Positions 831 through 35,186 of a DNA stretch of 64,000 nucleotides are shown in pieces. The position numbers and the translations under genes are program-made. Location: positions 8,680,001 through 8,744,000 of the forward strand of contig NC_086115.1 in the NCBI RefSeq assembly GCF_963921235.1, written 5' to 3'. The stretch comes from Mobula hypostoma (taxonomy: Eukaryota). Within the stretch, counting starts at the first letter, position 1. Every line of letters begins with the position of its first letter. The notes beneath the pieces were generated by a model. The model had not been told where the DNA came from, did no database searches, and was given only the letters and a program-made list of their open reading frames with translations.

Positions 831-934
831 TTGGATCAAAGACATCTGGATTCTTCCACTCCTTCTCGTCATGGTGAATAGCCCAGAGGTTGATGGTCAC
901 CTGAGTGCCTTTGGGGATTGCGTAGCCACCGATG
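831..934 (-). CDS. CYP17A1: CYP17A1-like exon 7 (SIGGYAIPKGTQVTINLWAIHHDEKEWKNPDVFDP)
   Basis: 104 nt; tgacag acceptor and gtaagt donor. Confidence 0.93.
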
Positions 935-1606
935 CTGTCAACACATACATTGGAATCAATACTTACAATTGCAATGGAATGCAAACATTCTAGGGTGTAA
1001 TTCTTCCCTGTGTGGATTGACAAGGTCTTCTTTAGCACTCTCATGCCCAGTGCACCTTACAGACAGGGAAGTATTGTTAAAGACACAAGAGGTTCTCTGG
1101 GGGCTGGGAATCTATAGCAGCACAAGCAAAATGCTGGAGCCGCTCAGCAGCTCAGGGAGCAGCCACGGAGAGGAGTAAACGGTCAACATTTCAGGCCGAG
1201 ACCCTACATCGGGACTGGAAATGAAGAGGGCAGGAGCCAGCAGTAGTTTTGAAAAGAGAGCACCATTGCAAGGTAGGAGTTTGGCAGCCAATTAATCCAC
1301 TAAAAGCTCCCAAAAATATCAGTTAAATAAATAATCAGATATCCCATTTGTTTGGTGACTTTGGCCAAGGAATAAACTTTGACCAGAAAACTAAGGAGAA
1401 CTCCCTTGCTCTTTGTTGAATAATTCCATAAATATCTAAGAAGATAGCATCCATCATAAAAGACTCTCACCATCCAGGACATGTCCTCTTCACATTACTA
1501 CCATCAGGGAAGAGGTAAAGGAGCCCGAAGACCCACATTCAACACAGGTCTTCTGACTCCTGTTAACCTTATTCTACTTTAATGCACTGCGTAATAATTT
1601 GATCAT

Positions 1607-1885
1607 GTTGGTGCATGGCCAAGTGGTTAAGGCGTTCGTCCAGTGATTTGAAGGTCGCTAGTTCGAGCCTTGGCTGAGGCAGCGTGTGTGTCCTTGAGCA
1701 AGGCACTTAACCACACATTGCTCTGCGACGACACTGGTGCCAAGCTGTATGGGTCCTAGTGCCCTTCCCTTGGACAACATCGGTGGCATGGAGAGGGGAG
1801 ACTTGCAGCATGGGCAACTGCCCGTCTTCCATACAACCTTGCCCAGGCCTGCACCCTGGAAAACTTCCGAGGCACGTTCATGGTC
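1607..1885 (+). mobile_element. tRNA-derived SINE
   Basis: A box tggccaagtgg, B box gttcgagcc, central gtgtccttgagcaaggcacttaacc; related copy on the minus strand at about 16990-17215. Confidence 0.78.
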
Positions 1886-1939
1886 TCTCTATATCATTAT
1901 TATAGGCATGGTCTCCATGCCTATAATAATTTGCTCTAC

Positions 1940-2775
1940 AGAATCAGAATCAGATTTAATATCCCAGGCATACGTCGTGAAATTTGTTAACTTTGTGGCA
2001 GCAGTACAATGAAATACATGATAATAGAAAAAAGAAAACTGAATTACAGTAAGTATATATACAGTATATTAATAGTTAAATAAATAATGATTAAAAAAAG
2101 GAAATTAAAAGTAGTGAGGTAGTGTACATGGGTTCAGTGTCCATTCAGAAATTGGACGGCAGAGGGGAAGAAGCTGTTCCTGAATTGCTGGGTCTGTGCC
2201 TTCAGGTTCCTGTACCTCCTTCCTGATGGTAGCAATGAGAAGAAGGTGATGGGGTCCTCAGTAATGGGCACTGCCTTTCTGAAGCATGGCTCCTCGAATA
2301 TGACCTAGATACTACAGAAGCTAGTGCCCATGATGGAGCTGACTAAGTTTACAACTCTCTGCAGCTTACTTCGATCCTGTATAGTACCATCCCTCCTCCC
2401 AAACCAGACAGTGATGCAGCCAGTTAGAATACTCTCCTCAGTACATCTGTAGAAATTTGCAAGTGCTTTTGGTGACATACCAAATCTCCTCAAACTCTGA
2501 ATGCAGTATAGCCACAGTCTTGCCTTCTTTATAGCTGCATCGATACGTTGGAACCAGATTAGGTCCTCAGAGATCTTGACACCCAGGAACTTGAAATTGC
2601 TCACTCTTTCCACTCCTGATCCCTTCATGAGGACTGGTGTGTGTTTCCTTGCCTTACCCTCTCTGAAGTCCACAATCAGCTCTTTGGTTTTTGTTGATGA
2701 TGAGTGCAAAGTTATTCCTGCAACACCACTCTACTAGCTGATACACCTCAGTCCTGTACGCCTTCTCGTCACCAA
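1940..2775 (-). mobile_element. Rex1/Babar-type LINE 3' fragment
   Basis: KTKELIVDFR...VERVSNFKFLGVKISEDL...FYRCTEESILTGCITVW; (tctgat)n tail. Confidence 0.85.
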
Positions 2776-2990
2776 GACAAGCTTTCACTGTGTCTTGGCA
2801 CGTGACATTGATAAGCTAATACCAGTCCCTGCAGAGTTTTGTGCACCGAGAGTATTATTGACGGGGAATTAAATGGAGATTGAATTCAGTGCCCGACGGA
2901 ATGGAAGGGGCAGGCTAGAAAAGTTGAATGGCCAGGAATTCCAGTTCCCATGTTCCCAATGGACAGCTAAAAGCAGCCAACTGTGTTTAC

Positions 2991-3160
2991 CTGGTGTCCA
3001 CTAATGCCATGTGAGGGATGAGGAGAGGTGACACAGGTTGGATCCTCAGGGTTTCACTGATGGTCGCATTCAGAAAATGCATGTTTTTTTTATCACTTAA
3101 TTTAGGAGTTCTCTCAAACCCAATATTGTTGTCGATTTCCTCTTGTATTTTAGTTTGTAT
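2991..3160 (-). CDS. CYP17A1: CYP17A1-like exon 6 (IQTKIQEEID...ETLRIQPVSPLLIPHMALVDT)
   Basis: 170 nt; ttgcag acceptor and gtaaac donor; K-helix ExxR. Confidence 0.93.
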
Positions 3161-3621
3161 CTGCAATGGGTGAAAAACGGTCAAATTACCTAATTATGTA
3201 TGATATTGAAACCCTCCAGGCTAGTTTAACATCTTGTCTGTTGGAGTTCATAATAAAATTGTTCTTTGCAAGTGCCATGAGGCTATGGGGGTCTGGGAGG
3301 CACTGTGAGGGGTGCTGGTGGAAGCACGTCCAATCGAAGGGTTCAAGGGCTCTTAGATGTGCAGAGAAAGGAGGAATACAGACTACGTGCACACGGAAGG
3401 TGATAAGGTGTCATGAGCTTAACTAGTACAGCAAAACATTGTGGGCCGAAGGGCCTGTTTCTCTACTGTACTGGTTTGTGTTCTATGTCCTAACTCTTAG
3501 GTGTGTCATATGTGCATTTATGTGAGTTTATATGTGTAAATGAAGTTGTGTGAGTTTGTGTGTATGAAAATGTGCAAAGAAGCCTTTGTCAGTATAATAA
3601 TGTGTTTGTGTGTGAGTGGTC

Positions 3622-6080
3622 ACTGTACCACCCAACACCCAGCCCCCATCCCACCCAACACCCAGTCCCCATCCCACCCAACACCCAGTGCACTGTACCA
3701 CCCAACACCCAGTCCTCTGTACCACCCAACACCCCGCCCCCATCCCACCCAGCACCCAGTTCTCTGTACCACCCAACACCCAGTCCCCATCCCACCCAAC
3801 ACCCAGTCCTCTGTACCACCCAACACCCAGTCCCCAAGCCACCCAACACCCAGTCCTCTGTACCACCCAACACCCAGTCCCCATCCCACCCAACACCCAA
3901 TCCTCTGTACCACCCAACACCCAGTGCCCATCCCACCCAACACCCAGTCCTCTGTACCACCCAACACCCAGTCCCCATGCCACCCAACACCCCGCCCCAT
4001 CCCACCCAGCACCCAGTTCTCTGTACCACCCAACACCCAGTCCCCATGCCACCCAACACCCAGTCCTCTGTACCACCCAGCACCCAGTTCTCTGTACCAC
4101 CCAACACCCAGTCCCCATGCCACCCAACACCCAGTCCCCATGCCACCCAACACCCAGTGCCCATCCCACCCAACACCCAGTCCTCTGTACCACCCAACAC
4201 CCAGTCCCCATGCCACCCAACACCCCGCCCCCATCCCACCCAGCACCCAGTTCTCTGTACCACCCAACACCCAGTCCCCATGCCACCCAACACCCAGTCC
4301 CCATCCCACCCAACACCCAGTCCTCTGTACCACCCAACACCCAGTCCCCAAGCCACCCAACACCCAGTCCTCTGTACCACCCAACACCCAGTCCCCATCC
4401 CACCCAACACCCAATCCTCTGTACCACCCAACACCCAGTGCCCATCCCACCCAACACCCAGTCCTCTGTACCACCCAACACCCAGTCCCCATGCCACCCA
4501 ACACCCCGCCCCCATCCCACCCAGCACCCAGTTCTCTGTACCACCCAACACCCAGTCCCCATGCCACCCAACACCCCGCCCCATCCCACCCAGCACCCAG
4601 TTCTCTGTACCACCCAACACCCAGTCCCCTGAGCCACCCAACTCCCAGTCCCCATCCCACCCAACACCCTGTCCCCATCCCAATCAACACTCAGTCCTCT
4701 GTAACGCCCAACACCCAGTTCCCATCCCACTCAACACCCAGTCCTCGTACCACTCAACACCCAGTGCTCTGTACCATCCAACACCCAGTCTTTTGTACCA
4801 CCTAACACCCAGTCTTCCATACCACCCAACACCCACTCCTCGTACCACTCAACACCCAGTCCTCTGTACCACCCAACACCCAGACCCCAACCAACACAAC
4901 ACCCAGTCCCCATCCCACCCAACACCCAGTCCCCATCCAACTCAACACCCAGTCCTCGTACCACTCAACACCCAGTGCTCTGTACCATCCAACACCCAGT
5001 CTTTTGTACCACCCAACACCCAGTCCTCCGTACCACCCAAAGCCCAGTACTCTGTACCACCCAACACCCAGTCCTCTGTACCACCCAACACCCAGACCCC
5101 AACCAACACAACATCCAGTCCCCATCCCACCCAACACCCAGTCCCCATCACACCCAACACCCAGTCCACTGTACCACCCAACACCCAGTCCCCATCCCAC
5201 CCAACAACAGTCCCCTGTACCACCTAACATCCAGTCCCCTGTACCACTTAACATCCAGTCCACATCCCAATCAACACCCAGTCTTCTGTACAACCCAACA
5301 CCGAATCCTCATACCACCCAACACCCTCATACCACCCAACACCCAGTCCTCTGTACCACCCAACACCCAGTCCCCATCCCACTCAAACACCCAGTCCTCT
5401 TTACCCCCCAACACCCAGTTCCCATCCCACTCAACACCCAGTCCTCATACCACTCAACACCCAGTCCTCGTACCACCCAACATCCAGTCCTCTGTACCAT
5501 CCAACACCCAGTCCCCATCCCACTCAACACCCAGATCCCATATCACCCAACACCCAGTCCTCTGTGCCACCCAACACCCAGTCTCCATCCCTCCCAACAC
5601 CCAGTGCACTGTACCACCCAACACCCAGTCCTCTGTACCACCCAACACCCAGTCCCCATCCCACCCAACACCCAGTCCTCTGTACCACCCAACAGCCAGT
5701 CTCCATCCCACCCAACACCCAGTCTTCTATACCACCCAACATCCAGTCCCCATCCCACCCAACACCCAGTCCTCTGTACCACCCAACACCCAGTCCCCAT
5801 CCCACCCAACACCCAGTCCTCTGTACCACCCAACAGCCAGTCTCCATCCCACCCAACACCCAGTCTTCTGTACCACCCAACACCCAGTCTTCTGTACCAC
5901 TCAACAACCAGTATCCCCACAGCTATCATCTAGTGTTCATCCACCCGATACCCAGTCCCCACTGTCCTACCCAACAATAATTCCTTCCCCACTCAATGCT
6001 CAGTCCTCTGTCCCAGCAGTAAACAAGCCCCCCGCTGAACATTCATCCCCTCCACCCAGCACCCAGTCCTCTGTCCCACC
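3622..6080. repeat. C/A-rich minisatellite of mixed 23- and 24-nt monomers (cccatcccacccaacacccagtc / ctgtaccacccaacacccagtcct) in CYP17 intron 5
   Basis: Directly visible tandem array; homogeneous to about 4630, then degenerating. It generates the spurious PPNTQ/GVGW ORFs. Confidence 0.95.
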
Positions 6081-6440
6081 CATTCGCTTCATCCCACGCA
6101 ACACCATCTCCCCCACAACCCCCCCCCCCAACCAGGGCAGCTGTATTCACTCCATCAGAATAGCAACACTCTGTCCGTTTTGCAGGACAATGGACTTCAT
6201 TTCTTTGTTTTTTTTTTAAATCATGTCCTTTCTTGCATAATTCGTGTTGCTAATTTATCTTTATCTTGTGAATCCTGTTTATGTGATGCCGCCGTTAGTA
6301 TGTTTTTCATCGCAGCTCTGCACACATATACTGTACTTGTGCGTCTAACAATAAACTCGACCTTGACTTTAACAAGAGCACGTGGGCTGACCTGAGCAAG
6401 CAGAACCAAGTGGACTGTTACGTGAAATCCCTTCTTTTAC

Positions 6441-6647
6441 CTCAGGATGCAGAATCAAGTAAAAAAAGACCCAGGTAAAGGTGATGGACGTGGTCTCCAT
6501 CCCGGCTCCATATACTTCTCCCACTGTCGTCATCAAGTGGTCGTCAGTCAGCTGTGGCGCAGGAAGCAGACTGTTGGTCTTGGCATTCTCCTGAGCTTTC
6601 AGCAGAGCGTCGATCAAGTCCTTTACAGAGTCGCTCTTAAAGTTTGC
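6441..6647 (-). CDS. CYP17A1: CYP17A1-like exon 5 (ANFKSDSVKDL...GEVYGAGMETT...LILHPE)
   Basis: 207 nt; tcccag acceptor and gtaaaa donor; I-helix AGxETT. Confidence 0.93.
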
Positions 6648-6769
6648 CTGGGAAAGTGGAAGCAGGAGAGATCTGAGCAAGGTCACCCATGCTAGGGCAG
6701 TTTATACTGAAGGAAGCGAGAAGCAAACTCATAGCCACAAGGACAAGTTCGGTTGCTCACAAACACAAG

Positions 6770-7072
6770 GGATGGTATGGTTGCATAGTGGTTAGTGTAA
6801 CCCTGTTAAATTGCCAGCAATCGCAGTTGATTTCCTGCCGCGGTCTGTAAGGAGTTTGTATGATCTCCCTGTGACGGCGTGTGTTTCCTCCCACATTGCA
6901 AAGTGGCACGGGTTAGGGTTAGTAAGTTGTGGACATGCAGTGTTGGTGCATGGTGACATTTGCTGTTTGCCCCAGAAACATCCTTGGACTGTGTTGGTCA
7001 ATGACACAAACAACACGTTTCACATTTCACTGTTTGTTTTGATGGACACGTGACAAATACAGTTAATCTTTA
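6770..7072 (+). mobile_element. V-SINE/HE1-like tRNA-derived SINE; further copies near 8130-8385, 15690-15960, 28670-28975, 49700-49900, 50570-50870, 59640-59800 and 62780-62900
   Basis: Recurrent ggagtttgtaYgttctccccgtgac...gtttcctcc...cccaca central domain behind a tRNA-like head. Confidence 0.7.
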
Positions 7073-7141
7073 ACAAGGGAAATAACATATCTATGAGCTG
7101 AAATGAGGACACCAGGGGGTGCACATTTCACATCCAACTAC

Positions 7142-7228
7142 CTTGTGCTCTTCAAATTTCTTCATTAAGATACTTTCTCGAATTGCAAGGGATCGTTTCA
7201 GGACCTGAAGAGTCTCATTGGGAAAATA
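7142..7228 (-). CDS. CYP17A1: CYP17A1-like exon 4 (YFPNETLQVLKRSLAIRESILMKKFEEHK)
   Basis: 87 nt, not in the ORF track and found by hand; ttacag acceptor and gtagtt donor; FPN motif and the Arg equivalent to human R239. Confidence 0.92.
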
Positions 7229-8549
7229 CTGTAATAAATGAAAGAGAGAGGGTTTCTAACCATGAATTATACTTGGTTCTACAAGCAGAGGTTTAATGTG
7301 CAGAAAATATCCAATTACTTGCAAATTATCTAAAGCTGCTAAGCCGTGACTACAGTCAGAGAGGAGGGTAAACAAGGATCCCTCTCATCACCTCTAGAGT
7401 CAGTGCTTGGCAAACGTAGACACTGGCAATGAAGTTCACTACCAGGCAGACTGAGCAAAATAGTGATCAAAGACCAAGCCTCATATCCCGCACTAAATTC
7501 ATAATCTACAAAGATCCCCTACATTGCTTTAGAGACATTCAAGAGGCGACGGAAGTTTAGAATACCAGAGATTGTGCAGATGCTGGGAATTCAGAGCAAC
7601 ACACACAAAATGCTGGAGGAACTCAGCAGGTCAGGCAGCATCTATGGAGAGTAATGAGTCTTAGGATGAGACCCTTCATCAGGAGTCCCAAAATGTCAAC
7701 TGTTTATTCCTCTCCGTAGATGCTGCCTGGCCTGCTGAGTTCCTCCAGCATTTTGTGTTCAATACTAAGGAAATTTGGCACGTTCCCAATGACTTTCATC
7801 TTTTTTCAACAGCCGCACCACAGGAAGCAAACTACCTGGATGCGTCACTGCTCGGTGCAGCAACTGCTGTGTGTGTGACCTCAAGAAACTAACTGCAGAG
7901 AGCTGTGGACATCACGGAAACCAGCCTCCCCTTCCTTGCACACTGTCTACGGTTCCCACAGCTTTGGGAAAGCTGCCAGCATAATCAAAGACCCCACCGG
8001 GATACTCTTTCATATCCCTTCTCCCATCAGGCAGAAGACACTAAATCTTGAGAACATGTACCACAGGCTGAAGAACAGGTTCTGTCCTGTTATATGGGCT
8101 TGGATGGGCCTTTTATATTACTGAGATACAGTGTGGAATAGGCCCTCCCACCTCTTCGAGCCGTTCCATCCAGTAGCCCCTGATCTAACCCTGGGACAAT
8201 TTTCAATGACAATTCACCTACCAACCGGTGTGTCATTGGACTGTGGGAGGAAATCGTAGCACCCGGAGGAAACCCACAGAGTCACGGGGAGAACGTACAA
8301 ACTCTGTACAGACAGGGGTGGGAACTGAGCCCGGGTCGCTGGTACTGTAAAGCGTTATGCTAACCACTACGCTACTGTGCCACCCTCTCGATCTACAGTA
8401 TCTCATCGTGGCCCTTGTATTTTATTTGTCTGCACTTTTTCTGTAACTGTAACAGTATTGTCTCCACTGTAATTCATACATTTTCACTGACCCTAAGGGA
8501 AAAAACATTTTGTGTAAAGAGATGGAGATAGAGATTAAGAATGGAACAC

Positions 8550-8779
8550 CTTTAGCCAGGGGAAGATGTCCACTAGGTGATATCCTCCCACATTTTCCAC
8601 AATTCCTTGCTTATACTCGAGGACCTTCAGGAACTCTGGGTCATCTCTGTCATGGGCTGAGTTGAAACACAGCTTGCCAACCACGTTTGAGAGAAACCAT
8701 ACCACCTCGATCATTATGTCCATTGGTGAGCCAACAAGCTGTTCAAATTTGGAGCAAGTCGAAGCGACTTCTTTGCCAA
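8550..8779 (-). CDS. CYP17A1: CYP17A1-like exon 3 (IGKEVAST...LVDIFPWLK)
   Basis: 230 nt; aaacag acceptor and gtgttc donor; LCFN...DPEF...LVDIFPWL. Confidence 0.92.
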
Positions 8780-10049
8780 CTGTTTTCACCAAATCAGGCC
8801 AGAAAAAGAAGAATGATGGTATTAATAAAAGAGTCATTGCAAATGTGTTTACTGATATTCAGATTGACACAGGATAAAACAGGAACATTGGCAAGCCTTG
8901 GGCAATATTGCAGAGGAAGGTAGTAATGAGAGTTCTGGTTTAGAAAGTTTGGTCGCTCATTATGCGCTGTGTCATATGATGTAGCCGATCATGGCCTTTC
9001 CATGACCACGACCACTCTTGGCAAATTTTTCTACAGCCTTCATCTGGGCAGTGACTTTACAAGACGGGTGACCCCAGCCGTTATCAATACTCTTCAGAGA
9101 TTGTCTGCCTGGCATCAGTGGTCACGTAGCCAGGAGTTGTGATCTGCACCGGCTGCTCATACGACCATCCACCACCTGCTCCCATGGCTTCACATGACCC
9201 TGATCGGGGGCTAAGCACGTGCTACACCTCGCCCAAGGTTGACTGAAGCCTAGGGGAGGGGAGGAGTGCCTTCCATCTCCTTTGGTAGAGACATATCTCC
9301 ACCCCACCAGCAGAAAGTAAACCCTGTTTTTCTCTCTCTTGACAATGGTGCCCATCCCTCCCCACCATTAAACACATTTAAATGGCACATAAGAAAGCAG
9401 CATCCATCATCAACAACCCCACCATCGAGCCCATGCACTATTCTCTCTACTACCATCAGGTAGGAGGTTCAGGAGCCTTAGGTTCCACTTCAGGAATATT
9501 CATTATTCCCCTAAATCATTGTGTATAACTTCAATCACCACTCCTCTGAACTGATTCTATGACCTACAGTGTCACTATCAAAGACTATTTACAACTCATG
9601 TTCTCAATGTTACTTTTTATTTTCACAGTTTGTCTTTTGCACGTAGGTTGTCAATCTATGTCTGTTTACGTAGAGTTTTTCCATAAATTCTATAATATTT
9701 CTTTTTTCCCTGTTAATGCTGCAAGAAAATTAATTTCAAGGTGGTATAGGGTAACATATACATACTTTGATAATAAATTTACTTTTAACTTTGAATTTTC
9801 TGCCTTTATTTCAGATTTCCTGCAGCTGTGGCTGTTTGACTTTATTTGGCCTTAAAGCTTGGATAGGATTTGCACACTTGTACTAAGTTGTTGGGTTGCT
9901 GTGGAGCTAAATTACCACCCCAAGAGGTAACTGGATCAAAAATAGGGCTTATTTTCTGTCACTGAAAATCTGAAATACAAATAGAAGAAGTTAAAAATTC
10001 ACAATAGGTTGGCCAACATCTGTGGAGTGAGAAACAAAGATGAGGTTTT

Positions 10050-10680
10050 TATAGACTTGATAGTATAATTAAAAAGATGTATGGTGTTTTGACCTTTATT
10101 AGTTGGGAGATTGACGAAGCTCTATAAAACTCTGGTTAGACCACACTTGGAATATTGTGTTCAATTCTGGTCACCTCATTGTAGGAAGGATATGGAAGTT
10201 TTTGAGGGAGTGTAGAGGAGATTTACCAGGATGCTGCTGCCCAGATTGAGGAGCATTTCTTATGAGGAAAGCTTGATCAAGCTGGAGCTTTTCTTTTTGG
10301 AGAAGAGGATTGGGTTGACTTGTACAAATGATAAGAGGCATAGATCGAGTGGACAGCCAACTCCTTTCTCCTGGGGTAGAAATGGCTAATATGAGAGGGC
10401 AAAAATGTAAGGTGATTGGAGGAAATTATAAGAGGGAATGTCAGAGTTAAGTTTTTTATGCAGAAAGTTCTAGGGTCGTGGAACACATTACTGGGGTGTT
10501 GGTAGAGGCAGATACATTAGAGACATTTAAGAGACTCTTAGACAGGCAAACGGAAGAAAGACAAAAATGGAGGGCTATGTGGGAGGGAGGGTTAGGTTGG
10601 TCCTGGAGTAGGTTAAAAGGTCAGCACAACATTGTGGGCCAAATGGCCTGTACTGTTCTATGTGTATGTATATCTATGTT
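10050..10680 (+). mobile_element. CR1 LINE 3' fragment
   Basis: [19 protein letters not shown] remnant and CR1 3' UTR. Confidence 0.78.
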
Positions 10681-10907
10681 CATTCCTCAGAACTTTCTCT
10701 CCCCACAGATGCTAACTGACCTGCTGAATAGTTTATAAGTCTCCTATTTTATTGTTGCGATGAAATGCAGCATCAGAGTCAGCTTTACTACCACAGAAAT
10801 CTGTTGTTTGGTGACAGCAGGGCAGTGTAAGTACATGTATCCAGATCAGTGGTCCTGATATCTCATAGTGCCAACACCAAGACACCGTGAGCCCCGTTTA
10901 CACTCAC

Positions 10908-11046
10908 TTGTTTCCTCAAGAGTCTCCTTCCCACTCTTAACTGTGTAGAGATGTGAATGAACGAGCTTTCTGTAAAACCTCCAGGTTGGGCTGAAATTTG
11001 CAAATGCAATGCCTTTCCCATCTTTACTGAGCAGGTCTGTTGTCAC
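10908..11046 (-). CDS. CYP17A1: CYP17A1-like exon 2 (VTTDLLSKDGKGIAFANFSPTWRFYRKLV...)
   Basis: 139 nt; tttcag acceptor and gtgagt donor; GIAFA and WxxxR motifs. Confidence 0.93.
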
Positions 11047-11279
11047 CTGAAACAAAGAGAGAAGATTATGGAAACTTTTACTTTGATGTTTAACTTACAG
11101 GTCCATTGGGGATAGGACTGCATCTGCAAGGGAAGAACATTGGCTGTTCCTGTGGAAGAGAAAGGGAAAGCTAAGAGGCCAAAAATAACAGAAATTTAAG
11201 GACCATTGTGTCTGTTTCCTGTAGGCTAGCTACAGACTCAGTTTCAATAACCCTTTATAATTCGTGTTATAGTTAAAGA

Positions 11280-12880
11280 GTCATAGAAAAATACAGCACA
11301 GAAACAGGCCCTTTGGCCCATCTAGACTGTGCTAAACCATTTAAACTCCTATCAACCTGCTCCCAGCCCATAGCCTGCCATACCCCTCCCATCCATGTAC
11401 TTATCCAAATTTCTCTTAAACGTTGAAATTGAGTTTGCATGCAGCACTTCCACTGGCAGCTCGTTCCACACTCTCACCACCCTCTGAGTGAAAAAGATCC
11501 CCCTCATGTTCCCCTTAAACTTTTCACCTTTCACCCTTACTCCATGACCTCTAGTTGTAGTCTCACCCAATGTCAATGGAAAAAGCCTGTTTGCAATTAC
11601 CTTATCTATACCCCTCATAATTTTGTATACCTCTATCAAATCTCCCCTCAGTCTTCTGTGTTCCAAGGAATAAAGTCCAAACTATTTCAATCTTTCCTTA
11701 TAACTCAAGTCCTCCAGTCCCGGCAACATCCTTGTAAACTTTCTCTGTACTCTTTCAACTTTATTTACATTTTTCCTATAGGTAGCTGATCAAAACTGGG
11801 CACAGTACTTCAAATTTGGCCTCACCAACATCTCAAAGTTTCAAAGGTTCATTTGTTATCAAAGTATACAACTCTGAAATTCTTCTTCTCCAGATAGCCA
11901 TGAAACCAAGAAAGGAAAGAAAAGCAGCACGATCATCAACTTCCAAATCCCCCCGCACAAAAAAAATCCCTTCCCCCGCACACAAAATAAATGAGAAAGA
12001 CCGGACAAAAACACAATACAAAAAAAATGTCTTGTATAACTTCAACATAACATCTTATCTCTTGTACTCAGTACTTTGGTTTATGAAGGCCAAAGTGGCA
12101 AAAGCTTTCTTTACAACCTGATCAACTTGTGACACCACTTTCAATGAGTTATGTACCTGTAGTCCCAGATCCCTTTGTTCCACTGCACTGCCCAGTGCCC
12201 TACTGTTTACTGTTTAAGACCTATCCTGGTTTTTCCTACAGAGTGCAACACCTCACACTTGTCTGCATTAAATTCCATCTTGTAAACACGAGGAATTCTG
12301 CAGATGCTGGAAATTCAAGCAACACACATCAAAGTTGCTGTTGAACGCAGCAGGCCAGGCAGCATCTCTAAGAAGAGGTACAGTTGATGTTTCGGGCTGA
12401 GACCCTTCATCAGGACTAACTGAAAGAGGAGCTAGTAAGAGAATCTGGCCTGCTGCGTTCACCAGCAACTTTGATGTCTGTTGCTTAAATTCCATCTGCC
12501 ATTTCTCAGTTCATTTTTCCAGCTGATCCAGATCCCGGTGCAAGCTGAGATAGTCCTCCTCACTGTCCCTACACCCCAGTCTTGGTGTCATCCACAGATT
12601 TGCTGATCCAGTTAACCACCTTATCATCCAGGTCATTGATATAGATGACAAATAACAGCAGACCCAGCACTGATCTCTGAGTTACTTCATTAGTCATAGG
12701 CCTTCAGTCAGAGAGGCAACCATCTACTACCACTCTCCAGTGCCTAATCCAATTTACTACCTCACCTTGAATGCCAAGCAACTGAACCTTCCTGACCAGC
12801 CTCCCATGCGGGACCTCGCCAAAGTCCATGCAGACAACATCCAGGGCCTTGCTTTCATCAACTTCCTCAAAAAACTCTCT
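11280..12880 (-). mobile_element. CR1 LINE fragment carrying two nested insertions
   Basis: RRLRGDLIEVYKIM...FFTQRVV on the minus strand; interrupted at about 11831-12027 and 12281-12484. Confidence 0.85.
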
Positions 12881-13473
12881 AAGATGTTCTTGGTATTATA
12901 TTCTTATTTGCAGTTTGTCTTCTTGTGCACATTTGTTGTTTATCAGTCTTGGTTTATGTATAGTTTTTCACAAATTCTATTGTATTTCTTTATTTTCCTG
13001 TAACTGTCTGCAAGCAGGTGAATCTCAAGGCAGTATATGGTAACACGTAATTATTTTATAAGTACACTGATTGCTTTGTGTACTAGGGAACCCAGCGTGG
13101 ATTTGTAAATGTATTTGAGCCTGTTACCCTGTGTTACAGCAATTTGAGCTACCGAAATTTGCTTCTTTGAAATTTCCAAATTACGACTCAAAAGATTTAA
13201 GACTCAAAATAAATTTCACAGTCACTGTACTTACATGAAAAAAAATAAACACAAAACGTATTTTTTCAGCCTGCACATCCTGATGTTTGGACAAAATGAC
13301 ATAGCTTCATGTTACAGAAAATCAAGCTGCAGACTGCAGCCCCTCCGTAACATAGAGTTGGCCAGTATTTGAGTGAGAGAGGTGAAAAATGCATATGGAA
13401 TTTGCTTCATACATTGCTGTACCAGCCACTGCCACTGACCAGGAGATGACTGCTTAAGTAGCTCTTTCTCGGG

Positions 13474-13668
13474 CTGGCTGGCGGTGTAGTGGCATCAGCA
13501 CTGGACTTCAAGGCAGATGGTCTTGAGTTCAAACCCAGCCGGGTCCCAACCTGGGCAGCAGCAGTATCTGTGTGGAAGAAAGTCCTGGCAATCTGCTTCT
13601 GTATCTTACCATGAAAACCCTATAGTCCATGAGATCATGAAGAGTTGGACTCAACTTAACAACTGAAC
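13474..13668 (+). mobile_element. tRNA-derived SINE with RTE/BovB-like 3' tail
   Basis: Head tggcggtgtagtgg...gagttcaaaccc; tail gtccatgagatcatgaagagttggactcaacttaacaactgaac. Confidence 0.6.
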
Positions 13669-13695
13669 GAGATGAGCTTTGAACTATTTACCCGG

Positions 13696-13919
13696 GCCGA
13701 CTATCTGTCCTTTTCCGAGGTTACGTCCATGCCTGGCTGTCCTTGGAGAGGGAGCACGCAGTCGTGGCAGGCACACTGGGGAATTTCCATGCAGTGATTC
13801 TCCCGCGGTATAGACAGTAGCAACCGTATTGTAATTTGAGTGTAGTTATGTCCTGTAAATATTGATCATCTTGTGTCTATGTGTTGTAAGTAAACTTGCA
13901 TAGTTTTGATATAAAAAAA
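13696..13919 (+). mobile_element. Tx1/L1-clade LINE 3' end
   Basis: Reads FRGYVHAWLSLEREHAVVAGTLGNF, resembling the Tx1 ORF2 C-terminus; followed by a short UTR and an A-rich tail. Confidence 0.6.
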
Positions 13920-14959
13920 GGAGCTCTTCCTCTGTCACAGAACAGCAACACTAAAATGCCTATAGACACTGAGGTAAAGGATAGGTGACCCCTATCAAAT
14001 CAGGCTGAGGAATGTCCATGGATGTTGCTAAAATGGACAGCATTCCATAAAACTCCACAGGAGGCACTCTTGGATAAAGTAGATATTCATAGAATTGATA
14101 ACAAGTTATCAATTTTTATTAGGGAAAAGGATGAGCAAAATCCTTTATGGACAACATTCATGTACTCAGATTGGCAGGTGTGACGGTGGTGTCCTGTGTT
14201 GGAGCCTCGTCTATTCACTTTGTGTATTCGTCACTTAGATAATGGGATGGGAACCCACATAAATGTGTTCATTGCTGAAGCAGAGGCAAGATGCACTGCA
14301 GATGAAACCAGAAAATTACAAAATTCATAGATAAATAGAAAATGGACAATTCTGGAGCCAACAGATTTATGGAGACCAGTGTGAGACCATTCACACAAGG
14401 CCCTTCTTCGTTCTCTCTTTTTCTATTGCCCTCTCACCCCTTCTCTTGCACTCACCTCTCTCTGGTCCCTTTTCTCCATGGTCCACTGTCCTCTGCTATT
14501 AGATTCACTCTTCAGCCCTTTACCCATTCCATCTATCGCCTCCCAGCTTCTCTCTTCATACCCCCTCCACGCCGACCCAGCTTCCTCCTCACCTGGTCTC
14601 ACTTATCACCTGCCTGTATGTATCCTACTCCTCCAGCCATCTGATTTTGGTCTCTCCCTGCTTCCTGTCCAGTCCTGATGGATAAAACACTGAAACAACA
14701 ACTGTTCATCCCTTTCCCTCTATGCTGCCTGACTTGCAGAGTTCCTTTGGCAATTTGCCTGTGTTGCTCTGGTTTCCATAAAGGTGGAAACAAGCGATTT
14801 TGGAATGTATCTGCAAGGAACTTTAAAATCTGGATGGATATTGAAAAGTCCATAGATTCTGGAGATTACAAAGATTAATTGTTTTGCTATGGCTTAAAAA
14901 TCCCAATACCTTCACAAGAAAAACACTTTGAGTGATTCTAGTACTCTCGGGTTAAGAGG

Positions 14960-15392
14960 AGTGTTTGATGGCTCTGGACCTGAACTCGCCAGAGCTTAGA
15001 AAGTGGTGGGGGTGGAATCTCATTGAAACTGATCAAATATTGAAAGGCCTGAATGAGTGGACCTGGAGAGGATGTTTCCTATGGTGCGGGAGTCTAGGAC
15101 CAAAGGACACAGCCTCAGGGTAAAAGGATGTCCTTTTAGATCAGAGATGAGGAGGAATTTCTTTAGCTGAAGGATGGTGAATCTGTGGAATTCATTGCCA
15201 CAGATGGCTGTGTGGACCAAGCAATTGGGTATATTTCAAGTTGATAGGTTCTTGATTAGTAAGAACGCCAAAGGTTATTGGGAGAAGGCAGAAGAATGGG
15301 GTTGAAAGGGAAAATAAATCAGCCATGATGGAACAGTGGAGCAGACTCGATGGGCTGAATTACTTAATTCTGCCCGTCTTATGGTCTTATGG
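14960..15392 (+). mobile_element. CR1 LINE 3' fragment
   Basis: gaggaggaatttctttagc...gtggaattcattgccacag signature with a (cttatggt) tail. Confidence 0.78.
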
Positions 15393-16686
15393 AAGGATGC
15401 AGTGGGCTTCGAAGGAATCATAATAGATTCACCAGAGTGATCCTAGGACTCCAAGAGTTAAGTTACAATGCAGATTGTACAGACCGGAACTATACTGATA
15501 GTGGTCTGAGGGCAAAAGACAGTTTGAAGATATTGATAAGAATTGAGAGCATGCATTAAGAGAAGTGATATCCATTCTCTCCAGAGGGAAAGTTTAAAAA
15601 TAAGAAGCACTTTTCTCCAAACAAAGAGCATTTCCACTCACACACATTGCGGCTGATGTGTAGAATTCTCTAATGCAAGACTAAAGATGAGCTGATTTGT
15701 CACGTGTTCATTGAAACATCAAAACAAACAGTAAAATGCATCGTGTACGTCAACAATCAACACAGTCCCAAGAATGTGCTGGGGGAAGCCTGCAAGTGTT
15801 GTCACACATTGCAGCGCCAACACAGCACGGCCACAACTTACTAACCCTAACCCTAACCTGTACGTCTTTGGAACGTGGGCACCCAGAGGAAACCCACGCA
15901 GATATGGGGAGAACGTACAAACTCCTCGCTGGCGGGCTGTCGAAGCACATCACTTTTAATGCAAGTGGCACATTTCACTGTGTGTTTTGTTGCCTCGACG
16001 TAGATGTGACAGATGAAGCTAATCTTTATTAAAGGATCTGGGATAACGGTCGATACATGAAATTAGGTGAGAGATTAGCCACAATCTCATTGCATGGCTA
16101 AGCAGGCTTAAGGAGTATTTATACCCTTAGAAAGCAAAATCAGGAAGATCTGAACACAGTTTTGCTTTATGTGGCGTTTATGGTGTAAATAACCATGCCA
16201 ACCATGTTATTTTATAATATTTTGATTCATAGAATAATTGGATTCAAAATTGACAATCGGCCTGGTGCATTGTGCGTTAGTGGCAGAGAGCCGAATCTTG
16301 CCATTCAGAGCTCTATGTGAGTTTTCATTGAGTAAAGGGGCCAAGTTTCTCCAGGAAAGCCCCTGCCTCTTCACTTTATACTTTCTTTCAGGATTTATTA
16401 GCAATTTTCTCTGACTATGGCTGCTTTCCTAAAGGACTTGAGTACAATTTTGGGGATGAACACCTCTCCTCAAAGCCCCTACATCTACAGTATATTACTG
16501 ACAGTGGGAGACTAATCTAATCGCACATTAATACGCTCATACATACTCACTTGCAAGGATTCTGCAACTCTCTTCATCCCCACTCCCCCACCCACCTACC
16601 TTCCCCCTCACCTGGCTTCACCCTTCACCTTCCAGCTTGTACTCCTTCCCCCACCTTCTTATTCTGGCTTTTTCCACCTTTTCTTC

Positions 16687-16724
16687 CAGTCCTGATGAAA
16701 GATCTCGGCCTGAAACGTCGACTG
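16687..16724 (+). ncRNA. Minimal hammerhead ribozyme motif
   Basis: CAGTC-CTGATGA-AAGATCTCGGCCT-GAAAC-GTC^GACTG, with a 5-bp stem I. Confidence 0.65.
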
Positions 16725-16989
16725 TTTATTCCTCTCCATAGATGCTGTCTGACCTGCTAAGTTCCTCCAGCACTTTATGTGTGTTACAACATAGAACATA
16801 ACAGTCCTTTGTCCCACAATGTTGTGCTAACCTTTTAACCTACTCTAACGTCAATATAACCCTTCTCTCCCACACTACCCTCCATTTTTCTATCATCCGA
16901 AATTCCTCAACATTTCCAGAATCCCTCGTGTTTACACAATGGATTGTTGCGTTTTACAATAAGAATGATAGATTTCCTTCTCTAAAGAG

Positions 16990-17215
16990 GAGGGAACGTC
17001 GACTCAGACCATGGAAGGCCTGCGTCAGGCATTTTCATGCCTTACAAGGCGCAGATTGGAAGTCTGTGTGGGGCGCTACTCCTCGCACAGACTAGAACAA
17101 TGTGTGGTTAAGTGCCTTGCTCAAGGGCACAAACACGCTGCCACAGCTGAGGCTCGAACTAGCAACCTTCAGATCACTAGACGAACGCCTTAACCGCTTT
17201 GTGATGTGCCCAACA
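16990..17215 (-). mobile_element. tRNA-derived SINE (same head as the 1607 copy)
   Basis: Reverse complement of the same tRNA-like head and core. Confidence 0.75.
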
Positions 17216-18023
17216 CAAAGACATTGATGTCTCTAAAAGACATCAGTAACTATTGATAAGAGTTTATTTAAAATCTAGTTCTACTCATCTAAGTTAAATT
17301 AAATTCCCCAGCTGTGATGGTGACATTCATATCTTTGAATCATTTGTCAACACTTCAGTATTTTACCCTCAATGACATTGCTTCCCTCTTAGAAAAATAC
17401 TTTTTCCATTAAATGGAAAGCTGAATTGAAGAGCAAATGTCTAAAGATCATGGAATAATTATAATATTATTATATAAAGCAGACCGAGGCCATTCAGCTC
17501 ATCACAAATATAGTGTTTGAGCTTTTCATAGATTCTATTGTATTGCTTTGTTCTTCTGTGAATGCCAGCAAGAAAATAAATCTCAGGGCAGTATATGGTG
17601 GCATATACATACTTTGATAATGAATTCACTTTGAACTTTGAAAGCTTAATCACATCTTCTAGCCATAGATCTTCTAAAACCTCATCCATGTGATGAGGGT
17701 TCCAGTCTTCACCAGTGAGACACTTTCATCCAGAGAGATACAAGTATCCATTCCACTTGAGGGACAAATTCCACCTATTCTCTTCCCTTGTTCTTCTCCC
17801 AACAACTTTAAGATCCCTCAAAGTTGCCGTGCAAGTTGATAGGGTAGATCAGAAGATGTATGGCTTGTTGGCCTTCATTGGTCAGGAGACTGAGTTCAGG
17901 AGATGATGTTACAGCTCTACAAATTCTGGTCAGACCAAACCTAGTTCTATTCTCCTCTGGTTGTCTCATTATACAAAGGATGTGGAAGTTTTAGAGAGGG
18001 CGCAGAGGAGATTTATGAGATGT

Positions 18024-18560
18024 TAGGCTGAAGAGAATGCTGGAAATCCTGAACAATGCACACAAGATGCTGGAGGAACTCTCCGTATCAAGCAACATCT
18101 ATGGTGCGGAATAAAGAGTTGACGTTTTGGGCCAAGACCCTTAGTCAGGGCAGGAATGGAAGGGAGCAGAAGCCAGAATAAGAAGTTGGAGGGAGATGAA
18201 GCGTACAAGACACTAGGGAGAAGTGAGACCAGATGAAGGAACAGGTGGGTGGATGAGGGGAGGGGTGAAGTAAAAAACTGGGAGGTGATAGGCAGAGGAG
18301 GTAAAAGGATGAAAAAGAAGGAATTTAATAGGAGAGGGTAGTGAACCAAGGAATAAAGGGAAGGAGGAGGGAACCAGAGGGAGGTAATGAGCAGGTGAGG
18401 ACAAGAGAAGGGGTGAGAGGGCAACTAGAATGGGGCTGGAAGAAGAGGGGGGGGGGGAGGGAGAATAAGTACCAGAAGTTATAGAAATTGCTGTTCGTGC
18501 CATCGGATTGGAAGTTGCCCTGACGGAAAATGAGGTGTTGCTCCTCCACCCAATCCAGGT
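18024..18560 (-). mobile_element. Penelope 3' end inserted into a CR1 fragment
   Basis: EEQHLIFRQGNFQSDGTNSNF on the minus strand plus terminal repeat; CR1 sequence on both sides (about 17810-19020). Confidence 0.72.
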
Positions 18561-21500
18561 TGTCAGTTCAGGATGCTGCCTGGATTAGAGTGCATGTCAT
18601 AGGATGAAAGGCTGTGCATGCTGGGGCATTCTTCTTTGGAGCACTGGAGGATGAGAGGCAACTTGATAGCGTATACTCTATAAGATTATGAGAGGCAAAG
18701 ATAGCATGGACAGAGAGTGCCCTTTTCCCCAGGGTGGCCATGGCCAAAACCAGAGGGCATCTGTTTAATATGACTAGAGGAAAGCAAAGGGGAGATGTAA
18801 GAGGTAGGTATTTTATAGAGAGAATGGTGGGTACCAGGGACGGTTGTAGAAGCTGATACAATAGGGACACCTAAACGATTCTAGGACATGGATGTACGAA
18901 AGACGGAAGTTTATAGACAGTGCGGAAGGGAAGGGTTTAGTCTGCTCCTGGAGTAGTTTTATATAGGTCACACAGCATCATGGACCAAAAGGCTCATTCT
19001 CTGTTGTACTGTTCCGTCTTCTAAATGTATACTCCAAAGATCTTGAGACCCTGCTAAGGACAGTAACTCATTCCTATTTATTCTATCTAGAATGAAACGT
19101 TATCAAATTCAACCTTGCCTCTCCATTGCTCAAAAGAAAATCGCAGCCTTTCCAAACTATATTCATCACTAAACTGTTGATCTGAGGTTTCCTGTTACAT
19201 GTTGTCTGCAGGTGAACACAGTATTCAGTATGAGATCCATTCAAGAGGAAGCTAGATCAGTCCATAAAGGAGATGTTGATTTGATGAGAGTCCATGTGGT
19301 CCACAAGTACCAGCATGGGCCAGTCAGACCGACACTGTCAATGATACTGTATTGAAAACAATAAATAAGAAGACCAAGCTAATTATGAATGTGATTCGCT
19401 AGCACCAGCCATTATTTAAATATCTGCAGGTTAGAGGAAATTCAGAAGGAGAGATTGAAACCCAAACAGATTTAAGTGCAGACTTAATGCCAGTGAATTG
19501 AAACCATAGGACCATAAGATATAGGAGCAGAAGCAGGCCATTTGGCCCATCACGTCTGCTCCACCATTAAGTCATGGGCTGATACAATTCTTCCAGTAGA
19601 CCCACTCCCCTGCCTTCTCCCCACACCCTTTGATGCCCTGGCTAATCAAGAACCTATCTATCTCTGCCTTAAATACACCCAATGACTTGGCTTCCACAGC
19701 CGCTCATGACAACAAATTCCACAGATTCACCACCCTCTGACTAAATTAGTTTCTCTGCATCTCCATTCTAAATGGACGTCCTTCAATCCTGAAGTCATGC
19801 CCTGTTGTCCCAGAAACAAAATAATATTACAAAATTCCATTTTCAATTCAATAGAGTAAACAAGAAACAAATCTCGATCAGCACAGGAACAAGCCATGAT
19901 GTTAGACCATCAGACATAGGGGCAGAATTAGGCCAAATGTTATGCCTAGCCAACTAAATTAGTAATTAAACGTCTAACTAAACAAATCCCTTCTGGCCTA
20001 CACAAGGTTCATATGCTCTGCATATTCATGTGCCTATCTATCTATATACTGTATATTTGTGTGTGTGCCCATTGCATCAGTGGTGCTTAGGGCAGCAATG
20101 AAGTTCCTGCTTCTCTGTCCAAGGTCACTCAGATGTAGAAGGATTCTTCATTGCTGTGTCTGTAACAATTTTGTTTTACCAATCGGGGTTGTTAGCCCTG
20201 AGCTGAACCCCCCCCACCCCCACCCTTTGACCCATTTTGGCATGGGTGACCCTAACAAAAGCCAAAGCATAAAGCCGTGACTTCAGCCAACATAGCTCTC
20301 CGGGTCATTGAGGCACACAGGCCTCCAAACCCAAGGACAAGGCTGTAGTCCTCCTGGAGGATGTGACCATCTAACAGCATGTTAATACCTCTAACATATT
20401 TGCCTCTATCATCCCTAGTAGCACAAACCAGGCAGCCACCACTCTCTGTGCAAAATAAAACTTGCCCTTTGAACTTACTCCCTCTCATCTAAATTGCATG
20501 CCCTCTAGTATTTCCACTCTGAGAAAAAGATACTGCTGCCTACTCAATCTTTACCACCCATAACCTTACCAACTCCCCTCAGCCTCTGACGTTCCAGATA
20601 GAACAACTCAAGTTTGTCCAGCCTCTTTTTATAGCACATGCCCTCTAATCCAGGCTGTGTCCTAGTAACCCTCTTCTGCACCCGCTCCAAAGCATCGACA
20701 GCCTTCCTATAACGCAATAATTCAAATGCAGCCTAACTGGAGTTTTATAATGCTGCAACATAACTTCCAAACTTTTGAACTCAGTGCCTTGGCTAATAAA
20801 GGCAAACATACCATGTTCCTGCCTTACCTCCCTGTCAGCCTATGCAGTCACTTCCAGGGAGCTCTGGACTTGGATCCCAAAGTCCACCTGCACATCAACA
20901 CTGCAAAGGGTTCTGCATCAACAATGCTCTGTTCCCCTACATTTGATCTCCCAAAAATGCAACACTTCACATTTTAAACACAAGAGTTTCTGTAGATGCT
21001 GGCAAACCAGAGTAACGCACACAAAATGTTGCAGGAACTCAGCAGGTCAGGCAGCATCTATGGAGGGGAGCAAACGGTCGATGTTTTGGGACCCTTCATC
21101 AGGACTGGAAAGGAAGAAGCTGGAATAAGATGGAGGTGGTGGAGAGGGAGGGGAACAATAATAATAATAATAAATATGTTATTGATCCTGAGTGGGAAAT
21201 TATTTTGTTACAGCAGCAACATTTAAAAACACACTTAGCAGTCTGAAGACTTAACTAATAATAAAGTATAGAATAATAATATACACAATAATAATTTACC
21301 AATGTGCAATAATAATGTATGAAATAATAAGACAGAGACTATTGTACTACGATGTGTGTTCTCAGGACTACAAGGTAGCAAGTGATAGGTGAAACTGGGA
21401 GAGGAGGATAGATGGAAGATATGAAGGGCTGAAGAAGAACAAATCTGATACGAGAGGAGAGTGGACCATAGGAGAAAGGGAAAGAGGAAGGTGATGGGTA

Positions 21501-22445
21501 GGTGAGGAGAAGGGAAAGGGTAAGAGGGGTGCCAGAATGGGGAACAGAAGGAGTGAAGGGGCATAGAAGGGAACCAGTGAGAGAGGGCTCTCACTGAATT
21601 CCTGGCAAAGAAAAGATTGAACATTCTTTAGGGTAGGCATAACTCAAAGAGACTTCACAGTTGAGTAGCAAATCATAAACACAAGAGATTCAGCAGATGA
21701 TGGATTTCCTTCACATTGGCCCTGATTAAACTCAATTTGCCATTTCTCTGAGCATATCTGCAAATGATCTGTATCCCAATGCATTCTCCAGCAGTCTTCA
21801 ACACTATCCATTACATCAAACAGAAGAGCTGGGGGAGCAGTGTCTATGGAGGGAGATACAGGACTGGCAGGGTAAGGGGGAGACAGTTGGAGTAAAAAGA
21901 TGGGGGAGGACGAAAGGTGGACTCACTTGAGGGACGGGGGTGAGTGGAAATGTTGCCAGAAGCTGGGAGGTGATAGGTGGAAGTTAAAAATGGCTGAAGA
22001 AAATGGAACCTGACAGGAGCCAGGGGAAAGGATACTGCTGCCTACTCTATCTACGACACTCGTAATCTTATGTAAGCTTCTATCAGATCTCCCCTCATTC
22101 TCTGCTGCTCCAGAGAACACCACCCAGGTTTGTCCAACCTTACAGCACGTGGAACCACGGAAAGGCTGCGGGATATTCTCTGAAAAGACTGAGCAATTTT
22201 TTTTCCATGATATAAAAATGGATCACATATTACATATGGATGAAATATGGATTTAATAAAATATATTTTATATAAAATATCTAATCTCCCTGAAGCAAAC
22301 ATCACATTTAACATCACTTCCAACAGAATGGTAAGTGACATGCCAGTGGACATAAACCCCATAAAGTGGCTTAAATAAAGTCGCATAATTGGCTACTACA
22401 TTAATTTAATAACATAATTGTTAAAAATTATCAATGAAAACTCAC

Positions 22446-22757
22446 CATGTTGGGTCTCCCCGCAAAGAACTTGCCCTTTTTAGTGAGGACCTCCTTGGCA
22501 TACCGATAGTGATTGATCACTACCGTATACTGAGGACCCATCATCAGGGAGAAGAGATCGCCATAGTCCTTCTGGAAACGCTGATAGAGCAGGTGAACAG
22601 GAAGGTTGCTCCTCAGGCTAAGCAGGCTACCAATGAATGGGAAGGAAGGCAAACTTTTCGGGTGCTTTCCCCCCTTAAGCTTTTTATGAACAAGGCTGGT
22701 GAAAGATAAGATGACAAAGCTAATTGTAATGATCAGAGTAGTCACAGTCAGATCCAT
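22446..22757 (-). CDS. CYP17A1: CYP17A1-like exon 1 ([10 protein letters not shown]...KFFAGRPNM)
   Basis: N-terminal membrane anchor, proline-rich [13 protein letters not shown] and FAGRP motif; donor ATG|gtgagt; TATA box upstream. Confidence 0.93.
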
Positions 22758-26799: not shown

Positions 26800-27250
26800 T
26801 AAAGCAGCCGAGTCTAGACACATCTGCCGCTGGGAAGCAGGAATAAGTTTTTAGTGGCAGCGGAGCCTCCCGTCCCCAGTGGGTTTGAAACGCCGAGTGC
26901 GGGCGGGCCTATCCGGCCACCGTAAGCCGGAGGAAGATGGCGGCCGCGGAGCCGCAGGCTCGCTTCGGTCAGTCGGTGAAAGGTTTATTGTCGGAGAAAG
27001 TGTCCGCCTGCACCACGGATGTGATCGCGCTCACTAAGCAGATCTTGAAGGGCTCCCGCAGCTCCGAGGTATGGGCGGCGCATCGAGAAAAACAAGCCGC
27101 CGGCCCCTCCTCCCCCTTTAGGGGCCGGGTTGTGACCCAGGCCCAGGTGGGGTTCGTTGTTGGATCCCAAGTGCCGGGTCTCAGTCGCGGACTTGGTTTC
27201 CACTCCAATTCCTCCAGTTCCGTTTCTGGCCCAGGTCGCGTTTCATCCCC
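26800..27250 (+). promoter_or_regulatory. BORCS7 CpG-island promoter/first exon with a YY1 motif (AAGATGGCGGC, 26934-26944) over the start codon
   Basis: Local GC/CpG richness, a GC box (gggcgg) and a YY1 consensus match. Confidence 0.7.
26937..27068 (+). CDS. BORCS7: BORCS7 exon 1
   Basis: ATG in a CpG island; QARFGQSVKGLL...KGSRSSE; donor gtatgg. Confidence 0.95.
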
Positions 27251-35032: not shown

Positions 35033-35095
35033 CTCCTGGGTCAGGCAGCTAGAAACATGGTGATGCAGGAGGACTCCATTCTGCACTCTGAGGAT
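35033..35095 (+). CDS. BORCS7: BORCS7 exon 2 (LLGQAARNMVMQEDSILHSED)
   Basis: 63 nt; ttgcag acceptor, gtaagt donor. Confidence 0.95.
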
Positions 35096-35186
35096 GTAAG
35101 TACTCTTTGTGATGACTCTATTTCTCTCCAGATGCTGCCTGCCTTACTGATTATTTGCAACATTCCCTGGAGCACACTTGTAGATA

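Follow-up and report, generated by a model that had tools for sequence, protein, structure and literature searches.

Corticosteroid and sex-steroid synthesis branch at CYP17A1, and synthesis of dehydroepiandrosterone (DHEA) needs the lyase step. In the human enzyme (NP_000093.1; structures 3RUK and 4NKV), the steroid 3-substituent forms hydrogen bonds with N202 and R239, the pocket's remaining polar residues are D298 and E305, and R347, R358 and R449 dock cytochrome b5 (PMC10226049). Among cartilaginous fishes, the P450c17 of the dogfish Squalus acanthias (CP17A_SQUAC) is cited as supporting DHEA synthesis in recombinant form (Trant 1996, cited in PMC13171685) and as a confirmed 17-hydroxylase (PMC13678717); Cyp17a1 is present in the dogfish interrenal (PMC13678717), and shark Cyp17a1 is male-biased in juvenile gonads (PMC12318234). 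Here we describe a CYP17-type P450 gene of the devil ray Mobula hypostoma, represented by its promoter and seven of its eight exons (1-7) on the minus strand of a 64,000-nucleotide (nt) stretch of NC_086115.1 (assembly GCF_963921235.1, positions 8,680,001 to 8,744,000), hereafter the window. Our analysis of the sequence indicates that it is a single-copy, fast-evolving CYP17A1 ortholog, most likely still a 17-hydroxylase/lyase, whose steroid pocket has probably been remodelled adaptively.

The seven exons join into one frame of 1249 nt (416 codons), with AG and GT flanking every internal exon and no stop in any of them, and the spliced translation was identical at 416 of 416 residues to XP_062927365.1, a 506-residue protein entered as 'steroid 17-alpha-hydroxylase/17,20 lyase [Mobula hypostoma]'. 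The gene in the window is the already annotated CYP17A1 and our model is equal to the RefSeq model, with nothing different between them; the automatic annotation carries no comment on the odd residues or the evolutionary rate described below. Exon 8 lies left of the window, where a coding sequence (CDS) span of 25,959 bp puts the stop codon about 3.2 kb left of position 1. An eight-exon structure was found in that the seven exons of the window reproduce the RefSeq protein and exon 8 is implied by the same entry, and the exon sizes presumably match those of human CYP17A1. An earlier reading of the window, made from the letters without database searches (the sequence-only reading), had described seven open exons with canonical splice sites behind a TATA promoter, all of which direct reading bore out; it had also allowed that exon 8 might be disrupted or absent, and this exon is intact in XP_062927365.1, with the Cys ligand within PFSAGPRICVGE. 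A tblastn search with the full-length protein matched no other part of the 64 kb than the seven exons.

The P450 domain PF00067 spans the whole protein, which gave full-length matches to dozens of solved P450s, the best of them being, in order, zebrafish CYP17A1 (E 7e-170), human CYP17A1 and zebrafish CYP17A2; exon 1, which encodes the N-terminal membrane anchor, the proline-rich hinge and the helix A region, matched zebrafish and human CYP17A1 in the PDB search, and exons searched singly had their best structural matches in CYP17A1. Human numbering was fixed by HMMER alignment to 3RUK/4NKV and by MAFFT alignment with NP_000093.1. The acid-alcohol pair E307/T308 (human E305/T306) and the ExxR motif E361/R364 (human E359/R362) are present, as is the heme-thiolate loop FxxGxRxCxG, which reads FSAGPRICVG in exon 8 and has Ser at its second position, near-universally Gly. 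In the MAFFT alignment the scaffold residues K83/K88/K89, R239, E305/T306, E359/R362, R440 and C442 (human numbering) were all retained, and the human protein, which shares the P450 fold, E305/T306, ExxR, R239, R440, C442 and a BORCS7 neighbour, stands at about 44% identity (primate cluster), M. hypostoma having three residues fewer before the I helix.

The sequence-only reading had placed the gene in the CYP17A1 syntenic slot and had taken it for a tandem paralog; the neighbourhood upheld the slot. BORCS7 (103 amino acids, PF16088) lies head-to-head with the gene, 4.18 kb upstream, and is also the upstream neighbour, on the opposite strand, of CYP17A1 in M. birostris and Hypanus sabinus. Relatives were collected by an exon 1 search of cluster representatives and by three homolog searches, the last with exons 1, 4, 6 and 7, and among the 120 proteins listed there was a single M. 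hypostoma CYP17. A phylogeny with chondrichthyan cyp17a1 and cyp17a2, which that reading had proposed as a check, was built with IQ-TREE (LG+C20) from 37 proteins (20 chondrichthyan and 12 bony-vertebrate CYP17A1, three CYP17A2 and two invertebrate outgroups) and gave a species-tree placement, not that of a separate paralog: the M. hypostoma protein was sister to M. birostris (100/98), within Myliobatiformes (100/100) and within Batoidea (100/100), and the batoid branching, with Myliobatiformes followed by Pristis, then the skates, then Narcine, is that of the species. The teleost CYP17A2 clade (99/99) was placed with ray-finned-fish CYP17A1, far from the chondrichthyan clade. This rules out a CYP17A2 identity, and the PDB score to 4R20 was also below those of the CYP17A1 structures; teleost CYP17A2 (4R20; Danionella) belongs to the CYP17 family and has Glu at the human D298 position, is about 41% identical and is not an ortholog. 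When a DNA run of the species itself was searched over 6300-8900, exons 3-5 had one contig's depth with no variant letters and no second contig of at least 80% likeness, and the assembly gene table calls no further gene within 10 kb downstream. Since this is the only CYP17 locus found, lies head-to-head with BORCS7 and follows the species tree, we conclude that the gene is the positional, phylogenetic and single-copy ortholog, and neither a tandem paralog nor CYP17A2. That it might be the only cyp17a1 in the genome was what the sequence-only reading itself had set against a paralog, and by that measure its paralog claim is refuted.

M. hypostoma differs from human at four basic positions, R347K, R358S, R364Q and R449K, the first three of which had been listed before and were confirmed by alignment. 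We counted residue frequencies over 184 vertebrate sequence clusters and found that Ser358 occurs also in Xenopus, coelacanth, chimaera, all rays and all sharks except Squalus (His), in 61 of the 184 clusters; that Gln364 is found in all chondrichthyans sampled; and that Lys347 is shared with chimaera, Squalus and Carcharodon. Squalus P450c17, which belongs to the same clade with 61% identity, has Lys347, Gln364 and a non-Arg residue (His) at 358. The human-type basic trio R347/R358/R449 is replaced in M. hypostoma by K349, S360 and Lys at human 449, but this trio is not family-defining, because S358 stands in 61 of 184 clusters and the dogfish enzyme cited as active has K347/H358. The lyase deficiency that the sequence-only reading had drawn from residues 347, 358 and 364 therefore did not hold up, with S358 and Q364 widespread, K347 recurrent and a dogfish enzyme with K347/H358/Q364 cited for DHEA synthesis. 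The shift of substrate that it had offered as the alternative may still apply. The b5-site differences from human are compatible with lyase activity and ancestral to cartilaginous fishes.

In the steroid pocket, N202K, K211G/D212Y/S213H (GYH), D298E, F300Y and V304M were confirmed against human, and beyond these we found I299V and, in exon 8, G436S (FSAGPRIC). The I-helix stretch DIFGAGVETT is among the most conserved of CYP17A1, from human to chimaera. Lys202 was present in all four myliobatiform proteins and in no other cluster (155 Ser, 21 Asn). Residue 300, Tyr here, is Tyr or His in Myliobatiformes and Phe in 183 of 183 others, and residue 304, Met here, is Ile, Leu or Met in Myliobatiformes and Val in 179 of 184 others; Ser436 occurs also in Hypanus and Hemitrygon, with Gly in 181 others. 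Glu298 and Val299 were found in M. hypostoma only, among the proteins seen, with Asp298 in 183 of 183 elsewhere, and polarisation at the DNA level placed Glu298 on M. hypostoma's own lineage. The closest relatives, M. birostris (XP_072095022.1, 83% identical) and Hypanus sabinus (79% identical), both BORCS7-adjacent positional orthologs, and Hemitrygon akajei, all of 506 amino acids, have Lys202, Ser358 and Gln364 and vary at residues 300 (Tyr or His) and 304 (Ile, Leu or Met), but they keep Asp298 and Ile299, and M. birostris has Gly436 and Met307. Squalus P450c17 differs by a canonical I helix, ADIFGAGVETS, and by Ser202 and Gly436.

The I-helix and F-helix substitutions named by the sequence-only reading are thus real, with R239, E305, T306 and ExxR kept as it had said, and they are very unusual. 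Lys202 and the changes at residues 300 and 304 extend across the order, and Glu298 is private to the species among those seen. Lys202, Tyr300, Met304 and Ser436 arose within Myliobatiformes, the stingray order. Sharks as well as rays have 1-alpha-hydroxycorticosterone, and since the odd residues are limited to one batoid order, the further suggestion that this gene is the elasmobranch 1-alpha-hydroxylase is a misfit and that identity is unsupported.

Identity between CYP17A1 of M. hypostoma and those of sharks is 58-63%, as against 72-89% between one shark and another. Tajima relative-rate tests gave it 80 unique changes against 24 in Pristis (p 4e-8), and against the same sawfish M. birostris had 84 versus 21 and Hypanus 73 versus 21; between M. 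hypostoma and Hypanus the test was not significant (42 versus 29). Because each of these rays is faster than Pristis while M. hypostoma and Hypanus do not differ significantly, the acceleration is order-wide in Myliobatiformes, at 3-4 times the sawfish rate. Between the two Mobula species 87 of 506 residues are different, with a path length of 0.21 as compared with 0.068 between Hypanus and Hemitrygon, and polarisation with ray outgroups assigned 28 changes to the M. hypostoma branch and 33 to the M. birostris branch, with 26 ambiguous. The differences within the pair are unevenly placed: exon 3 has them at 29% of its residues, exon 5 at 20%, exon 6 at 10% and exon 7 at 6%, and the core around ExxR is still constrained. 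CYP17A1 of Narcine bancroftii, which has Leu at human T307, is also accelerated (70 versus 31 unique changes against Rhinoraja, p 1e-4), so fast evolution of this gene is not limited to Myliobatiformes.

For the terminal lineage we aligned contigs from DNA runs of two relatives, B and C, to 6300-8900 (exons 3-5), and counted as M. hypostoma changes the differences present in both. The share of 31-mers in common was about 0.4 for relative B and about 0.18 for relative C, whose exon 5 protein is nearest to dasyatids. Exon 3 and exon 5 each had seven lineage-derived changes, six of them nonsynonymous, and over exons 3-5 there were 12 nonsynonymous changes in 410 sites, 2 synonymous changes in 115 sites and, among the differences listed, 6 changes in 772 nt of unique intron. 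Per site, nonsynonymous changes outpaced intron changes about 3.8-fold (Fisher p 0.006, with at least 6 intron changes among the differences listed), and their rate also exceeded that of intron and synonymous sites pooled (p 0.013, on the same listed differences). At all 12 of the 12 nonsynonymous changes the M. birostris residue is the ancestral-side residue shared by relatives B and C, as expected of orthologs. GC-biased gene conversion was considered as a cause and rejected, with 6 strong-to-weak and 4 weak-to-strong derived changes. Against relative C, exon 5 differs at 23 of 207 nt (18 nonsynonymous, 5 synonymous), with the nonsynonymous rate (dN) about equal to the synonymous rate (dS), and there are 4 differences in 228 nt of flanking unique intron.

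Signs of transcription came from small same-species runs presumed to be RNA. Exon 1 words were found fully or largely in three of them and partly in a fourth, and one contig runs through exon 5 to precisely its donor at 6441, with 28 more letters elsewhere that fit the exon 6 junction. These observations are suggestive, though not conclusive, of CYP17A1 transcription in M. hypostoma.

Relaxed constraint, under which the gene would be on its way to losing its function in stingrays and devil rays, would account for the 3-4-fold acceleration, for substitutions at otherwise invariant sites, including G436S beside the heme ligand, and for dN about equal to dS in exon 5. However, all four myliobatiform proteins retain an open frame across a tree length of about 0.57 substitutions per site, or about 290 replacements, for which a rough estimate (nonsense at about 6% of missense) expects about 17 stops under neutrality and none was seen; exons 6-7 are conserved, at 6-10% difference versus 29% in exon 3; the gene is apparently transcribed; and the nonsynonymous rate lies above the intron rate, which relaxation alone cannot yield. 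We regard decay as improbable. Since relaxation cannot exceed the neutral rate, adaptive change is favoured over pure relaxation, and since the frame stayed intact where stops were expected, it is favoured on a functional enzyme; we infer that the acceleration reflects an adaptive adjustment of how the substrate is positioned, and not decay. A tandem paralog deficient in lyase and next to a canonical cyp17a1, possibly a 1-alpha-hydroxylase, or in a variant of this idea hidden paralogy or gene conversion, could draw on the 83% identity between congeners and on the long CDS spans of M. birostris and Hypanus, in which exons could hide, but it has against it one gene per species beside BORCS7, exons 3-5 with no further contig at 80% likeness or more, a tree that is the species tree, agreement of all 12 shared changes with the M. 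birostris residue, no GC bias, and pocket changes confined to one order while the steroid is common to sharks and rays; it is scarcely credible, even less so than decay.

A closer contender is the same ortholog with a substantially shifted catalytic profile, brought about by recurrent positive selection on the pocket, for example with lyase lost or strongly reduced, a different delta-4/delta-5 preference or hydroxylation at a new position. The replacement of near-invariant residues (as judged from 184 other clusters) by Lys202, Tyr/His300 and Ile/Leu/Met304 would fit it, as would the positions concerned, since the human enzyme has N202 hydrogen-bonded to the 3-substituent of the steroid and its pocket roof lined by D298 and R239 (PMC10226049); so would Glu at 298, found also in lyase-deficient teleost CYP17A2, and the nonsynonymous excess on the terminal lineage. 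On the other hand, androgens and oestrogens depend on C19 precursors that a single-copy gene still has to provide, the heme loop is intact together with ExxR and the acid-alcohol pair, and D-to-E and F-to-Y are conservative, so that we hold a shift of this extent to be unlikely. Somewhat more room, though still well short of an even chance, may be given to the proposal that the sole CYP17A1 of stingrays and devil rays is under recurrent positive selection on the pocket roof (202, 211-213, 298-300, 304) with a shifted product profile. Were it so, species might, with comparably modest probability, carry different pocket variants in which substrate preference, the lyase/hydroxylase balance or the products have changed.

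Several points weigh against an ordinary hydroxylase/lyase with a tuned pocket. D298, F300 and G436 are essentially invariant elsewhere, which leaves room for a real change in catalysis; the selection estimate comes from 175 codons, and from contigs rather than reads, and shared intron differences may exceed those listed; a diverged paralog could strictly still lie elsewhere, if its nucleotide identity were under 80% or its score fell short of the 120 listed proteins; and the RNA nature of the runs is a guess, with low depth (13 and 2.7), an intron 4 retained by one contig and no coverage of exon 4 in the presumed-RNA run used. With these in the balance, an adaptively remodelled but working CYP17A1 is still the reading that we favour. 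It is an endoplasmic reticulum-anchored heme-thiolate P450 that most likely still 17-alpha-hydroxylates pregnenolone and progesterone with electrons from P450 reductase and also carries out the 17,20-lyase step towards sex steroids, both activities presumably being kept; its b5-site differences are ancestral, its pocket-roof changes at 202, 300, 304 and 436 arose in Myliobatiformes, and Glu298 and Val299 are private to M. hypostoma among the species seen.

The features of the window are collected in Table 1. Exon 4 was located by enumerating all open AG..GT stretches from exon 3 to exon 5, of which only the one tabulated had CYP17 likeness. CCAAGGCA, an SF-1-like half-site about 20 nt further 5' of the TATA box, is a lead only; the SF-1 consensus YCAAGGYCR had 5 matches in the window against 4.8 expected, and none in the promoter. 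Annotated CDS spans for the same 506-residue product go from 26 kb (M. hypostoma) through 41 kb (M. birostris) to about 241-242 kb (Hypanus sabinus), and the long spans could reflect huge introns or model artefacts; hidden extra exons are conceivable. The interspersed repeats of introns 3-4 belong to a very abundant family in M. hypostoma and its relatives, with a summed contig depth of up to about 5 million in DNA runs and very high depth in all four runs, and they hide intron differences in the contig comparison.

Table 1. Positions of the CYP17A1 exons, of the BORCS7 exons and of repeats in the 64 kb window
Feature	Position	Strand	Description
TATA box	22829-22823	minus	TATAAAA, 66-72 nt 5' of the ATG; read directly
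CYP17A1 exon 1, coding part	22757-22446	minus	312 nt, residues 1-104; ATG at 22757, donor GTGAGT
CYP17A1 exon 2	11046-10908	minus	139 nt, residues 105-150, ends in phase 1; acceptor tttcag, donor GTGAGT
CYP17A1 exon 3	8779-8550	minus	230 nt, residues 151-227; helices D-F; Lys207 (human N202) and Gly-Tyr-His 216-218 (human K211-S213)
CYP17A1 exon 4	7228-7142	minus	87 nt, residues 228-256; Arg244 (human R239); YFPNETLQVLKRSLAIRESILMKKFEEHK
CYP17A1 exon 5	6647-6441	minus	207 nt, residues 257-325; I helix GEVYGAGMETT (human G297-T307)
CYP17A1 exon 6	3160-2991	minus	170 nt, residues 326-382; Lys349, Ser360, ExxR (E361/R364), Gln366
CYP17A1 exon 7	934-831	minus	104 nt, residues 382/383-416, ends in phase 1; acceptor ttgacag, donor GTAAGT
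BORCS7 first exon	26937-27070	plus	MAAAEPQARFGQSVKGLL; open reading frame opens at 26937
BORCS7 next exon	~35000-35100	plus	LLGQAARNMVMQEDSILHSEDV
Reverse transcriptase, BORCS7 intron	31742-33421		intact open reading frame of 559 amino acids
Tc1/mariner transposase, BORCS7 intron	34213-34647		fragment
Tandem array, intron 5	3623-5912		2.3 kb, period 47 nt (also scored 70 nt), ~48 copies, 82% matches; C-rich on the plus strand (GC skew -0.75), with long spurious open reading frames in several frames
Short interspersed repeats, introns 3-4	7518-7778 and 8214-8387		very abundant family (see text)
Tandem repeat	61384-62013		open on both strands (HCHRKAVPVIEDPGKE, MFLARVLDDWHCFPVA repeating); probably a minisatellite inside a repeat element

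In the literature searched we found no paper joining Mobula with CYP17A1 and none on the evolution of stingray CYP17A1, and the order-level remodelling of otherwise invariant pocket residues with faster-than-neutral change is undescribed there. If the enzymes turn out to be kinetically ordinary, the finding is that of a fast-evolving ortholog that was already correctly annotated. If the pocket reading is true, a natural series of pocket variants within one order could reveal in what way steroid positioning and the balance of hydroxylase and lyase are set by residues 202, 298, 300 and 304, questions that bear on prostate-cancer drug design and on the poorly known steroid biology of rays.

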